64,000 nt of DNA from Octopus sinensis (taxonomy: Eukaryota), in NCBI RefSeq assembly GCF_006345805.1, contig NC_043018.1, positions 22,568,001-22,632,000 of the forward strand, given 5' to 3'. The notes under the pieces are model-generated. The model was not told the DNA's origin, searched no databases, and saw only the letters and a list, made by a program, of their open reading frames with translations. Positions 1,856-32,118 of this stretch are shown here, one piece after another. Position 1 is the stretch's first letter. Every line of letters begins with the position of its first letter. The position numbers were made by a program, and so were the translations under genes.

Positions 1856-1925
1856 CTTCTTTGGTTTATCATCTATTCCCTCGTATATCAATCCTTCTGG
1901 CAGACAATTTCCTTCCGTGCCCCAT
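1856..1925 (-). CDS. IDO: IDO-family exon 9 (G-WGTEGNCLPEGLIYEGIDDKPKK); gene continues beyond the left edge
   Basis: tag/gtaact sites, 70 nt; LPEGLIYEG motif. The GGSAAQS loop and proximal-His exons were not found in 1-1855. Confidence 0.92.
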
Positions 1926-3177
1926 CTATTTTTGTAAGAAACGGAGAATGAGACATAAGCTTTAGGTGCTGGGGCTTGACATTGTGACATTTATTTTTAC
2001 ATACGAACAAATGTGTTTGCATGTGTGGGCACTGTATGGCCAAATGGACTGTTCCTTCTAAGGCGCAATGGCCCAGTGGTTAGGGCAGCGGACTCGCGGT
2101 CGTAGGATCGCGGTTTCGATTCCCAGACCGGGCGCCGTGAGTGTTTATTGAGCGAAAACACCTAAAACTCCATGAGGCTCCGGCAGGGGATGGTGGTGAT
2201 CCCTGCCGTATTCTTTCGCCACAACTTTCTCTCACTCTTACTTCCTGTTTCTGTTGTACCTGTATTTCAAAGTGAGTGTTTATTGAGCGAAAACATCTAA
2301 AGCCCCACGAGGCTCCGGCAGGGGATGGTGGTGATCCCTGCCGTATTCTTTCGCCACAACTTTCTCTCACTCTTACTTCCTGTTTCTGTTGTACCTGTAT
2401 TTCAAAGGGCCGGCCTTGTCACTCTCTGTGTCACGCTGAATATCCCCGAGAACTACGTTAAGGGTACTCGTGTCTGTGGAGTGCTCAGCCATTTACACGT
2501 TGATTTCACGAGCAGGCTGTTCCGTTGATTCGGATCAACCATAACCCTCGTCGTCGTAACCGACGGAGTGCTTCCACACAATAGGGCTTTTATCACACAC
2601 ACTGTGTCACACAGATTGTGCATGAAAATAGCGTTAAGAATGGATGCGTGCGTTGGTGAGGTTTGCTTGTCGACTATTAAGCTTCTTACCGGTTGCTCAA
2701 GGGCAGATAATTTTTAATTGATTGAATAACTGCATCGTCATCGTCAAACAGTGGAGACAAACTACTATGAACAAACAAATATACATACGGACAAATGTAG
2801 AATATATCGATATATACACACACACACACATATAAATATATATATATATATATATATATATATATATTATATATATATATATATAATATAATATATATAT
2901 ATATATATATATATACATATGTGTGTGTGTATTCAGATAGATACATACATACATACATACATACATACATCATACTACATAATACATATATACATAGATC
3001 GACTCGGACAGATAGACAGACAGGCAATTAAACTGACAGGCAGGGAGGCAGTCAGACATACAGACAGACACACACACACACACAGACATACATACATACA
3101 TACATACCTAGACAGACAGACAGACAGATAGATAGAACGAGTGCAAGGAAATTTAAAAAGATAGTACAATTCCTTAC

Positions 3178-3229
3178 CCATTCAAAAAAGGCCGCATTTT
3201 TTTGAAAAATACTTCAGCTGTTAATTTTT
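3178..3229 (-). CDS. IDO: IDO-family exon 8 (E-KLTAEVFFKKMRPFLN-G)
   Basis: cag/gtaagg sites, 52 nt; FFxxxRPFLxG substrate-binding motif. Confidence 0.92.
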
Positions 3230-5574
3230 CTGAAATTGAATTTCAAAAACAAAAAAATATCATTAAGGAAATTATTTTTTTTTAAAATAGGCGCAGCAGT
3301 GGCTGTGTGGTAAGTAGCTTGTTTACCAACCACATGGTTCCGGGTTCAGCCCCACTGCGTGGCACCTTGAGCAAGTCTCTTCTACTATAGCCTCGGGCCG
3401 ACCAAAGCCTTGTGAGTGGATTTGGTAGACGGAAACTGAAAGAAGCCCGTCGTATATATGTATATATATATATATGCGTGTGTGTGTTTGTGTGTCTGTG
3501 TTTGTCCCCCTAGCATTGCTTGACAACCGATGCTGGTGTGTTTACGTCCCCGTCCTTAGCGGTTCGGCAAAAGAAACCGATAGAATAAGTACTGGGCTTA
3601 CAAAGAATAAGTCCTGGGGTCGATTTGCTCGATTAAAGGCGGTGCCCCAGCATGGCCGCAGTCAAATGACTGAAACAAGTAAAAGAGAGTAAAAGAGTAA
3701 AGAGGTCCGACTTTGTGTTAAGAATTTTGCTTCCCAACCACATGGTACCGAGTTCAGTCACACTGCGTGGTACCGTGGGCAGGTGTCGTCTTCTACAATA
3801 GCCTCGGGACGACCAAAGCCTTGTGAGGTGTTTTGATAGACGTGAGCTGAAAGAAACCCGTCGTGTGTGTGTGAGTGTGTGTGTGTCCACCACCACCGCT
3901 TGGCGACCGCTGTTGGTTTGTTTACGTACTCGTAACTAGCGGTTCGACAAAAGAGACCGATAGAATAAGTACCAAGCTTTTAAAAAGAATAAATACTGGA
4001 GTCGACGCATTCGACTAAAATTCTTCAAGGCGGTGCCCCAGCTTGGCCGCAGTGTAAAAGACTAAAACAAGTGAATGATAAATGATTTGAATTTGATAGT
4101 TTTGCACGTTTTTAAATGGCAACCATGGCTTTTCCACGACGTGGGTATATCTGGCACCAGGTAAGTGTGGCCGGATCAAGAAGTAAAGGTTCTACCCGGA
4201 TGTCAGGGATCCGTGCCCTAACCAAATTTTTAAAACTTTATATTGTAAATATTATATATATTTTATTGTAATCACCAACGTTTTAAGCTACTACACCCTA
4301 TATGTTTGTCTGTATTTGTATGTCCCCTCTATGTAACGCCTTAATGGCGAATCTTTCATGAAATAAAGTAGCTTGCTTACCAACCACATGGTCCCGGGTT
4401 CAGTACCACTGCGCGGCACCTTGGGAATGTGTCTTCTATTATGGCCTCGGGCCGTCCAAAGCCGTATGTGTGGCTTTAGTAGATGGAAACTAGAAGAAGC
4501 CGTCGTATATGTATATATGTATATATATATATATATATATATATATATATATATATGTGTGTGTGTGTGTGTGGTGTGTGTGTGTGTGTGTGTGTGTGTG
4601 TGTGTGTGTGTATGTATGTATGTATGTGTATATGTATATGTATGTGTGTATATGTTTGTGTGTGTGTTTCCGTCCCCGTAACCTAGCGGTTCGGCAAAAG
4701 ACGCCGATAGAATAAGTACTAGGCTTACGAAGAATAAGCTCTGGGGTCGATTTGCTCGACTATAAAGGTGGTGCTCCAGCATGGCCGCAGTCAAATGACT
4801 GACACAAGTAAACGAGTAAAAGAGTAATCCATAAACCGAGAACCGGATCATTTCCTTGGCTCTGCTGTTTCGCAGCGATAAAAGACATGGAGGTTAAGGG
4901 AGGTAATTCCTGTAGTGGCTATTCAGAGTTACAACAGAGTTCTTTCCCTCGATTAAAGAATTACTTCCCTTGTCTATAAATGTTTTTTTTTTTCCTTTTC
5001 GAAGTCTTCGTTTTTCTGTGTGTCCATCTGTCCATTTGTCTGTCTCTCTCTCTCTCTCTCTCCCTCTCTGTCCCTCTCCGTCCCTCTCTCTCCCTCTCTC
5101 TCCCTCTCTCTCCCTCTCTCTCTCTCTATCCCTCTCTATCCCTCTCTATGCCTCTCTCTCCCTTCCCTCCTCACTCCTCTCTCTCTCTCTCTCTCACCCT
5201 CTCTCCCTCTCCGTCCCTCTCTCTCCCTCTCCGTCCCTCTCTCTCCCTCTCTCTCCCTCTCTCTCTATCCCTCTCTCTCCCTCTCTATGCCTCTCTCCCT
5301 CTCTTTCTCTTCCCTCCTCACTCTCTCTCTCACCCTCTCTCCCTCTCAGTCCCTCTCTCTCCCTCTCTGTCCTTCTCTCTCTCTCTCTCTCCCTCTCTCT
5401 CCATCTCTATCCCTCTCTCCCTCTTTCTCCCTTCCCTCCTCACTCTCTCTCTCTCTCTCCCGCTTCATCTGTTTTCCCCCTCTTTCTCTCCCTCTCTTTT
5501 CACGCATGTATTTCTCTCTTTATGTTTTATTTGTTTCACTCTTTGGAATGCGGCCATGTTGGAGCCACGGGACA

Positions 5575-30729: not shown

Positions 30730-31030
30730 TCATTTGTCTACAATGTCTTGTACAGAATTGGCAACCAATACCTTTACCAGTAATAGCCGGCTGTAGTTGC
30801 AACTGGGCTTCATGTACCTTTGCATGTCATTTAAGTCCTCCTGCCGAATTACACTCTCTTCCACATGCCCGACAGATATGATTAGTATGGTGTGTAACAC
30901 CACCACCAGTGGCCGGGTTGTCACTCATCTGTCTCGTTTTATGACTACGAAGATGGCTCTTGAGTCCAGCTTTACTGAGGCAGGGTCTTGCACAGACACT
31001 GCATGTCAGCATCATAGGAAGACCCTTCCC
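30730..31030 (-). pseudogene. Three C2H2-type zinc fingers, probably the C-terminus of an RTE-like LINE
   Basis: CSVCARPCLSKAGLKSHLRSH, CRACGRECNSAGGLK*HAKVH (in-frame stop) and CQFC. Confidence 0.55.
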
Positions 31031-32034
31031 ATCTGGAAGTGTAACAGCGATGACAAAAAGATAGATAGATAGATAGATAGATAGATAGATAGATAGATAG
31101 ATAGATAGATAGGATAGATAGATGGATAGATAGATAGATAGATAGATAGATAGATAGATAGATAGATAGATAGATAGATAGATAGATAGATAGATAGATA
31201 GATAGATAGATAGATAGATAGATAGATAGGTGGTAGATGGATAGATACATGAATGAATGGATGGATAGATGGATGGCTGGATAGATATGTTTCTTTTTTA
31301 GCCACACAGGGCTGCACACAGACGGGACAGATTACAAAGTAGAGCTTTTCTTTTTTGGGGGAAAAAAGTGGGGTAGGTTTTAAATCAAAAGGGATCGTAA
31401 AAGGAAAGAAGAAAAAAAGAGAAAAAGAGGAAAAGAAACAAAAGAAAAGAAAAAAGGAAAAAAAGGATCAATAAGGATCGTGTATCACAGTGTCATGATG
31501 TAAGGTGTAAAGGGGGAAGCAGATAAGGTTTATCCGTGGGAAGAAAAGCCTACGGAAAAGACCACAGTAAACTCGGTCAATATTGTTATATGTTACCACA
31601 TTTGTTTGCAAGTGGGTAACCATCTGTCTTCAATTTCCGGGTTCATAGGATTATGCTCAAGGTTGCTTCATCATTCATACGCGCCATCCTTGCTACATTC
31701 ACCCATCTTTTTTTAAAACATTCGCTAGACAAAACTTGCCTCTCTACTCTCACTTTCCTTTTCAAGTGATACTAGATAGATAGATAGATAGATAGATAGA
31801 TAGATAGATAGATAGATAGATAGATAGATAGATAGATAGATAGATAGATAGATAGATAGATAGATAGATAGATAGATAGATAGATAGATAGATAGATAGA
31901 TCCAGCATATCACTGAAATAACTGGCGACCACTGAGTGAAATATAGCATAGGAAGAGAAAGTATATTGCCAAAACATGGACACTGAAAGCGCAAATATAA
32001 ACCAAATGGAAACACAATTAAGATAATAACTCAC

Positions 32035-32118
32035 CAGCGGATCTCCAAGAATGTAACCATAGAGAGGATCAATGCAAAACAAACCCTGTTTGAAGTCGGC
32101 AACTATCTTACATTCCAT
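32035..32118 (-). CDS. IDO: IDO-family gene, coding exon 1 (MECKIVADFKQGLFCIDPLYGYILGDPL)
   Basis: ATG at 32118, gtgagt donor, 84 nt, phase 0. FCIDPLYGYILGDP matches the IDO N-terminal motif (human IDO1 YHIDEEVGFALPNP). In-frame stop upstream. IDO subclass not determined. Confidence 0.8.

Follow-up and report, generated by a model that had tools for sequence, protein, structure and literature searches.

Exons 1-9 of a predicted cephalopod indoleamine 2,3-dioxygenase gene in Octopus sinensis, and the question of its kinship with abalone myoglobin

What kind of protein is encoded by the split gene that runs from position 32118 to position 1856, on the minus strand, of a 64,000-nucleotide stretch of the Octopus sinensis genome (contig NC_043018.1, positions 22,568,001 to 22,632,000; this whole 64-kb stretch is called the window below)? 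The gene belongs to the family of indoleamine 2,3-dioxygenase (IDO) genes, and a first-pass annotation had likened its product to the IDO-derived myoglobin of abalone, offering three roles for it: a low-efficiency dioxygenase, an oxygen-binding protein, or an alternative entry to the kynurenine/ommochrome pigment pathway. The reading that we favour, with a probability of roughly 80%, is that the window holds exons 1-9 of a 14-exon cephalopod IDO gene, whose product would be a working enzyme with a tryptophan (Trp) dioxygenase role.

The exon model was built by tblastn with an approximate human IDO1 probe, by motif scans and by inspection of splice sites, and the numbering of the human IDO1 probe was checked afterwards against known residues. 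Nine exons, all on the minus strand and with AG...GT at the internal borders throughout, join into a frame of 774 nucleotides (nt) and 258 amino acids (aa) with consistent phases and no stop. This independent rebuilding arrived at the same open 774-nt frame as the first-pass annotation, and at exactly the same outer coordinates, 1856 and 32118. The 258-aa frame runs into a GT donor, with no stop codon there, and the gene therefore continues to the left of window base 1. The exons had been described as absent from the list of open reading frames (ORFs), which is so for all of them except exon B: this exon is in frame in a 61-aa ORF with a TTG start (20574-20759, minus strand), and the others lie in no ORF of at least 60 aa. 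Similarly, the gene is hidden from a prokaryote-style ORF track of this kind, but it can hardly be called hidden when orthologues in sister species are annotated as IDO, however imperfectly. The exons, lettered A to H from the second onwards, and an alternative acceptor are as follows.

32118-32035, minus strand: exon 1, 84 nt, with the ATG start, encoding MECKIVADFKQGLFCIDPLYGYILGDPL, then a GTGAGT donor
21688-21593, minus strand: exon 2 (A), 96 nt, encoding EKLPSYFETWNELAKNMPKLVETKEFRNKVNN
20705-20586, minus strand: exon 3 (B), 120 nt, encoding MTLLDIAKLNGHKEKRLAHLQLAIIASGYIWQEGEEGVTK and carrying RLAHL..GY.WQEGE
19274-19156, minus strand: exon 4 (C), 119 nt, encoding 39 aa plus a split (K) and holding Y126 and I129
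16665-16651, minus strand: exon 5 (D), a 15-nt micro-exon encoding (K)PLEL(D), with a GTGAGT donor
15552-15453, minus strand: exon 6 (E), 100 nt, encoding (D)NLRCLYNVTEGENAEWFITVTIQIEFEFAAAIQ and holding F163, I164 and T167
8770-8653, minus strand: exon 7 (F), 118 nt, encoding SILEAIQAVSDSDTPRLNRCLREINDVILNMLKVFRRMH
3229-3178, minus strand: exon 8 (G), 52 nt, encoding (E)KLTAEVFFKKMRPFLN(G) and holding F226, F227, R231 and L234
1925-1856, minus strand: exon 9 (H), 70 nt, encoding WGTEGNCLPEGLIYEGIDDKPKK and ending at a GTAACT donor
1926-1959, minus strand: alternative acceptor upstream of exon 9, AAAG/CT..., with in-frame AYVSFSVSYKNR

The 258-aa product matches the Pfam IDO profile (PF01231) with E = 5.5e-68 and a score of 230 bits (gathering cut-off 26), its residues 14-255 covering positions 5-250 of the 412 in the profile, and in HMMER comparisons with the human chains it reaches E = 1e-51 for IDO1 and E = 7e-51 for IDO2. 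By these scores, the exon assembly together with the family match is far beyond chance, and the earlier assignment to the IDO family of a gene that is incomplete in the window was borne out. The window-encoded part keeps F163, F226, R231 (Trp carboxylate) and L234. Neither a C-terminal exon nor a second IDO copy was found in the 64-kb window.

The only close database match to exons A-C was an 89-aa O. vulgaris protein, 'indoleamine 2,3-dioxygenase 2', on chromosome OX597835.1. An exhaustive HMMER search with this fragment as the query led to the orthologue, RefSeq XP_052831732.1 from Octopus bimaculoides ('indoleamine 2,3-dioxygenase 1-like'; the older model is XP_014786950.1), and when the exon A-C peptide and the O. 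bimaculoides C-terminus were put through word-indexed searches, octopus fragments alone came back. Three intron-less RNA-seq contigs, referred to here as cephalopod-like IDO mRNAs, are 52-54% identical to the octopus protein and have long cephalopod-type stretches in common with it; exons B and G are taken to be real because these mRNAs contain equivalents of both. Compared with the O. vulgaris locus, the introns of the window gene are 92-97% identical and the exons have 1 mismatch in 450 nt, exons A (0/96), B (0/120) and E (0/100) being free of mismatches; the source of the window is therefore a very near relative of O. vulgaris. Compared with O. bimaculoides, exon 1 encodes the identical 28 aa with 3 nt differences from the start of XP_052831732.1, and mismatches number 4/96 in exon A, 2/100 in exon E, 2/118 in exon F and 4/70 in exon H. 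The AG and GT of exon A are kept, as are the splice sites of exon C in both O. vulgaris and O. bimaculoides, and the micro-exon including its AG and GT is identical across all three species. The window gene is an ordinary, conserved cephalopod IDO, of a family that is already known and annotated in sister species, and nothing in these sequences points to a new kind of protein or to a second origin of an IDO-derived myoglobin.

The part of the gene beyond the window was read from the O. bimaculoides locus (L002, CM046622.1), the O. vulgaris locus reaching no further than the window and the searched collection holding no C-terminal model from O. vulgaris. Window positions 1-244 are collinear with L002 23659-23902. 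In O. bimaculoides the exon that follows (LVGGSAAQSS...) begins at L002 23978, which places exon 10 about 76 nt beyond window base 1. The C-terminal exons of O. bimaculoides encode GGSAAQSS, YMPKPHR, FRSYHMTIVTKY with the proximal His, RGTGGTSLIPFLK and RGTGGT, and SLIPFLKDIRHTTKESRIEVAPNGPAK is present in the older model XP_014786950.1; G262-S263-A264, R343 and His346, the proximal ligand, are kept in the orthologue, and so is the substrate loop GTGG with T379. In O. sinensis, five further exons would lie to the left of the window (LVGGSAAQSS..; DKQMFLDEMKGYMPKPHR..; ..FRSYHMTIVTK; YVV..RGTGGT; SLIPFLK..stop), and the total by orthologue is 14 exons and about 402 aa, the canonical IDO length. 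Over 200 codons comparable with O. bimaculoides there are 11 synonymous and 8 non-synonymous differences (dN/dS = 0.18), all acceptor and donor dinucleotides are kept, and the number of stops is 0. By these measures the gene is under purifying selection and probably functional.

The public IDO models of O. vulgaris and O. bimaculoides are faulty in several of the exons described here. The 89-aa O. vulgaris model (locus L001, OX597835.1, 10001-15163) takes as its start an ATG in the intron shortly upstream of exon B and ends early, because it passes the GTGAGT donor of the micro-exon unspliced and meets a TGA; the real gene is much larger. XP_052831732.1 shares exons 1, A, C, D, E, F and H with the window gene and is without B and G. 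In its locus, the flank of exon B aligns up to a run of 761 N (L002 13210-13970), and a run of 489 N (L002 22193-22681) lies between exons F and H, where exon G is absent; the two exons missing from the model thus coincide with N-runs in the assembly. Skipping of exons B and G as true alternative splicing was considered as the main explanation and rejected, given the N-runs and the invariant catalytic residues held by exon G. The RefSeq model of O. bimaculoides also uses the acceptor equivalent to that at 1959 with exon 8 skipped, and thereby loses F226, F227 and R231; the use of this upstream exon 9 acceptor is most likely an artefact that the assembly gap caused in the gene model, although it may mark an alternative isoform. 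Further downstream, XP_052831732.1 reads through the donor after GTGGT (L002 34760-34816) into a spurious tail, CKFMYLFLSDIHRNGILVNY, and the older XP_014786950.1 carries the canonical tail SLIPFLKDIRHTT.... The window gives exons 1-9 in their correct form, including the 15-nt micro-exon and the 52-nt exon with F226, F227 and R231, and the two faulty models are repairable from it. Between the micro-exon and exon E lies an intron of about 1.1 kb in the window (15553-16650), 0.8 kb in O. bimaculoides (L002 16594-17393) and about 8.4 kb in O. vulgaris (L001 15160-23566); the last figure suggests a large lineage-specific insertion in O. vulgaris.

Relative to human IDO1, the octopus protein retains Y126, F163, F226, F227 and R231 and has C129I, V130I, F164I and S167T. 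The first-pass annotation had listed all of these except V130I, and each of its calls was correct by HMMER alignment and in a table of pocket residues; the low efficiency that it drew from C129I, F164I and S167T is not favoured, as T167 and I164 are common in invertebrate IDOs and in IDO2, and position 126 has the IDO1-type Tyr. Across 40-odd IDOs, Thr is the majority residue at position 167; Ile, Val, Phe or Cys is common at position 164 and Leu at position 129, where one other sequence has Ile; the human IDO2 pocket has Leu129, Ile164 and Thr167. Position 126 is His in vertebrate IDO2 and in nearly all of the sampled invertebrate IDOs. Tyr126, the codon for which is in exon C at about 19195, is the unusual residue of the pocket: apart from mammalian IDO1 and the three Octopus species, it was seen only in one cephalopod-like mRNA (P0257), a Lottia paralogue (P0060), a chiton paralogue (P0010) and the abalone myoglobins, a distribution that hints at repeated His-to-Tyr switches at this position in molluscs. 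The octopus protein has the Tyr126 of an IDO1-type pocket (Tyr126 and Ser167), but Thr at 167, and of the IDO2/proto-IDO-type pair (His126 and Thr167) Thr167 alone fits, position 126 being Tyr in the window, O. vulgaris and O. bimaculoides.

The low affinity of IDO2 for Trp has been put down to His143 and Thr184 (PMC8518741), and in a 2026 structural study IDO2 His143 keeps Trp in a flipped, unproductive pose (PMC13440583). The H143Y mutant of IDO2, with Thr184 unchanged, has a Km of 5.6 uM and an efficiency raised 1290-fold, to about half that of IDO1 (PMC13440583), and of the pocket residues it is Y126 for which published mutagenesis shows the strongest link with efficiency (PMC13440583, PMC8518741). 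The octopus Tyr126/Ile164/Thr167 is the same combination as in human IDO2 H143Y at these three positions, and because of this match a reasonably efficient Trp dioxygenase is favoured; by this analogy, the octopus IDO is probably reasonably efficient. That an IDO1-type Tyr126 was independently gained on an IDO2-like pocket, giving a natural H143Y-like enzyme, is a more tentative proposal, for which we would offer slightly less than even odds. If true, it would make the octopus protein a convergently evolved efficient tryptophan dioxygenase and could explain how a cephalopod IDO substitutes for TDO in ommochrome synthesis. The natural Tyr126/Thr167 pocket also provides a ready test of the structural explanation for slow IDO2-type enzymes, and its kinetics would show whether efficient IDOs arose more than once.

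How close, then, is the octopus protein to a myoglobin? The motif on which the likeness was based, KRLAHLQL...SGYIWQEGE, is located at 20601-20663 on the minus strand, and by exact look-up the abalone myoglobin Q01966 (Haliotis diversicolor), which reads YRQKRLAHLQLVLITSGYLWQEGEGG, does contain KRLAHLQL..SGY.WQEGE, as the first-pass annotation had stated. Together with Tyr126 (..KP[IV]LTY[AG]D..), which is likewise common to octopus and Q01966, and with the 'myoglobin-like' names that NCBI has assigned automatically to many molluscan IDO homologues, this would fit an IDO-like myoglobin that binds oxygen, or a protein on the way to becoming one, an O2 store in muscle that has lost its dioxygenase activity as in abalone. 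However, the names are automatic transfers of the abalone name (PMC9481534) and the motif is family-wide: KRLAHLQL is also present in a Pinctada protein and in an IDO2-like protein of a chiton, and RLAHL..GY.WQ[ED]GE is seen in dozens of IDO-family representatives, human IDO2 reading RLAHLVLSFLTMGYVWQEGE. In full-length comparisons, which used a composite of the window N-terminus and the O. bimaculoides C-terminus, identity to Q01966 is 39%, below the 45-46% found with the IDOs of Aplysia, Mytilus and Batillaria. A neighbour-joining tree (44 taxa, 391 columns, 200 bootstraps) unites octopus with the cephalopod-like mRNAs at 100% bootstrap and away from Q01966, which falls among gastropods with weak support. 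Myoglobin-diagnostic columns were defined as those with a conservation of at least 90% among 42 ordinary IDOs and with a change in all three abalone myoglobins, the other two being members of the Q01966 cluster from H. asinina and H. rubra; they are N147D, W237F, G378D and G381K/R, and with the last two the GTGG substrate loop is lost. Octopus keeps N147, W237, G378 and G381, and has the enzyme state at 4/4 of these columns (2 window-encoded, 2 from the O. bimaculoides orthologue); at position 167 it has Thr, and the abalone myoglobins have C167. IDO-like myoglobins have been reported only from Vetigastropoda without conventional myoglobin, and no longer metabolise Trp (PMC4191572). On these comparisons the octopus protein has no specific kinship with the myoglobins, the special likeness once proposed finds no support, and an oxygen-storing role is very improbable; we infer that the protein would be a working enzyme.

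Were it an enzyme of low efficiency, similar to IDO2 or to a proto-IDO, its Trp turnover would be marginal and its real role might lie with 5-substituted tryptophans or in non-catalytic or signalling functions. Against such a reading, squid genetics reportedly shows that cephalopod IDO gives enough kynurenine for pigment in tdo-null animals. T167 and I164 are IDO2 states, most of the characterised invertebrate IDOs have been called low-efficiency (PMC4191572), and the methyl group of Thr184 upsets the active-site water network in IDO2 (PMC13440583), but the Trp-locking His at 126 is replaced by Tyr in octopus, the very change that activates IDO2 while the Thr is retained (PMC13440583), and we regard a sluggish enzyme as unlikely. 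It is also conceivable that the copy in O. sinensis is truncated or in decay, with nine exons still intact through recency and the 3' part broken; its 3' third is beyond the window, and the public models are fragmentary in two sister species. These fragmentary models are, however, accounted for by assembly gaps and donor read-through, collinearity with O. bimaculoides reaches the window edge, and the low dN/dS, the lack of stops and the splice sites kept across three species, including those of the 15-nt micro-exon, all speak against decay, to which we give the least credence of all. Several points weigh against a working and efficient dioxygenase as well. The C-terminal third with the proximal His lies beyond the window, and its integrity is read from O. 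bimaculoides only; the tree is a neighbour-joining one on 391 columns with deep molluscan nodes at 10-32% support; the efficiency prediction carries the result with a human IDO2 mutant over to a protein that is only 37% identical; and the pocket-lining I129 and I130 are unlike both human enzymes. Moreover, Tyr126 is insufficient for activity, as the abalone myoglobin has it and is reported to be without Trp catabolism (PMC4191572).

As a working dioxygenase, the product would be a haem protein of about 402 aa with the IDO fold, binding O2 at its ferrous haem and inserting the two atoms of this oxygen across the C2-C3 bond in L-tryptophan to give N-formylkynurenine. IDO is one of the two entry enzymes to the ommochrome pathway, and for the pigment of their skin and eyes cephalopods depend heavily on ommochromes made from tryptophan. 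In Euprymna berryi, tdo-null animals are reportedly pigmented and albinos are said to arise only in the tdo+ido double knockout (Ahuja et al. 2023, Curr Biol 33:2774); if so, cephalopod IDO would already have been demonstrated as a second route into ommochrome synthesis. The IDO of this species presumably belongs to the orthology group of the cephalopod-like mRNAs with which the octopus protein is united in the tree. The octopus IDO would work alongside TDO in the metabolism of pigment and kynurenine. Among the three roles offered in the first-pass annotation, entry to the kynurenine/ommochrome pathway appears to be the best, and it is not a new idea.

The window also holds repeats. A short interspersed element (SINE)-like sequence of about 200 bp is present in 20 copies on both strands in the 64-kb window, with 74-97% identity and usually beside a (TA)n/(TATG)n microsatellite. 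Copies are at 3285-3511, 11615-11807, 17193-17391, 22101-22320, 27780-27967, 33487-33691 and 34933-35137, with further ones at 38538-38750, 39280-39490, 48904-49114, 52829-53052, 57877-58098 and 60806-61025, among others, and they occupy much of the IDO introns. ARAGORN and Rfam found no tRNA, 7SL or 5S head in this element, and the Rfam and tRNA scans across the window returned nothing. Minisatellite regions are located at 38022-38245, 53499-53867, 5958-7253, 2137-2407 and 27097-27463; the arrays include a perfect one of 40 nt x 5.6, one of 67 nt x 5.5 (94%) and one of 1.3 kb with periods of 45/58/103 nt inside the F-G intron, and two 2-copy tandem duplications, of 135 and 184 nt, look exact. 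Long intronic ORFs (e.g. 5883-7286 and 1023-1760) were considered as genes and rejected, being translations of microsatellites or minisatellites. Upstream of the IDO start (32119-64000) no protein-coding signal was seen, spliced genes not having been systematically searched for, and the ORFs of at least 150 aa there are all microsatellite translations or repeat-derived. Elsewhere in the family, some IDO homologues are far longer than 400 aa (P0028 Lingula, P0011, P0019 Pinctada, P0252), being fusions or else gene models that were merged: P0011 (792 aa) contains two units of IDO, P0252 has a tRNA-synthetase class I (W/Y) domain (PF00579) beside IDO, and the Pinctada P0019 is named 'RING-type domain-containing protein' by UniRef.

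Among known systems, the closest are the IDO orthologues of O. bimaculoides and O. vulgaris, which are about 97% identical at the nucleotide level in the shared exons and have Tyr126 and Thr167 in common with the window gene, position 164 being Ile in the latter and Leu in O. bimaculoides. The Euprymna berryi IDO is reportedly a further cephalopod IDO standing beside TDO at the entry to ommochrome synthesis. The abalone myoglobins have the same IDO fold and share Tyr126, F163, R231, H346 and KRLAHLQL..SGY.WQEGE with octopus, but they have C167, N147D, W237F and DTG[KR] instead of GTGG, and octopus has none of these. Human IDO2 (PDB 9uz1 and related), again of the same fold, has in common with octopus T167, I164, G262-S263-A264-A265, R231 and F163, together with the motif RLAHL..GY.WQEGE almost verbatim; it has His at 126 whereas octopus has Tyr, a difference equal to the activating H143Y change (PMC13440583). 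Human IDO1 (PDB 2d0t, 5wmw and others) shares with octopus Y126, F163, F226, F227 and R231 and also, judged by the orthologue, H346 and T379, and the two are about 400 aa long, whereas its S167, C129, V130 and F164 are replaced in octopus by Thr, Ile, Ile and Ile; identity of the octopus protein to the solved structures of IDO1 and IDO2 is 37-40%. Because the split between IDO1 and IDO2 is a vertebrate event, the octopus gene is not an IDO1 orthologue, and any high efficiency of its product would therefore be convergent.

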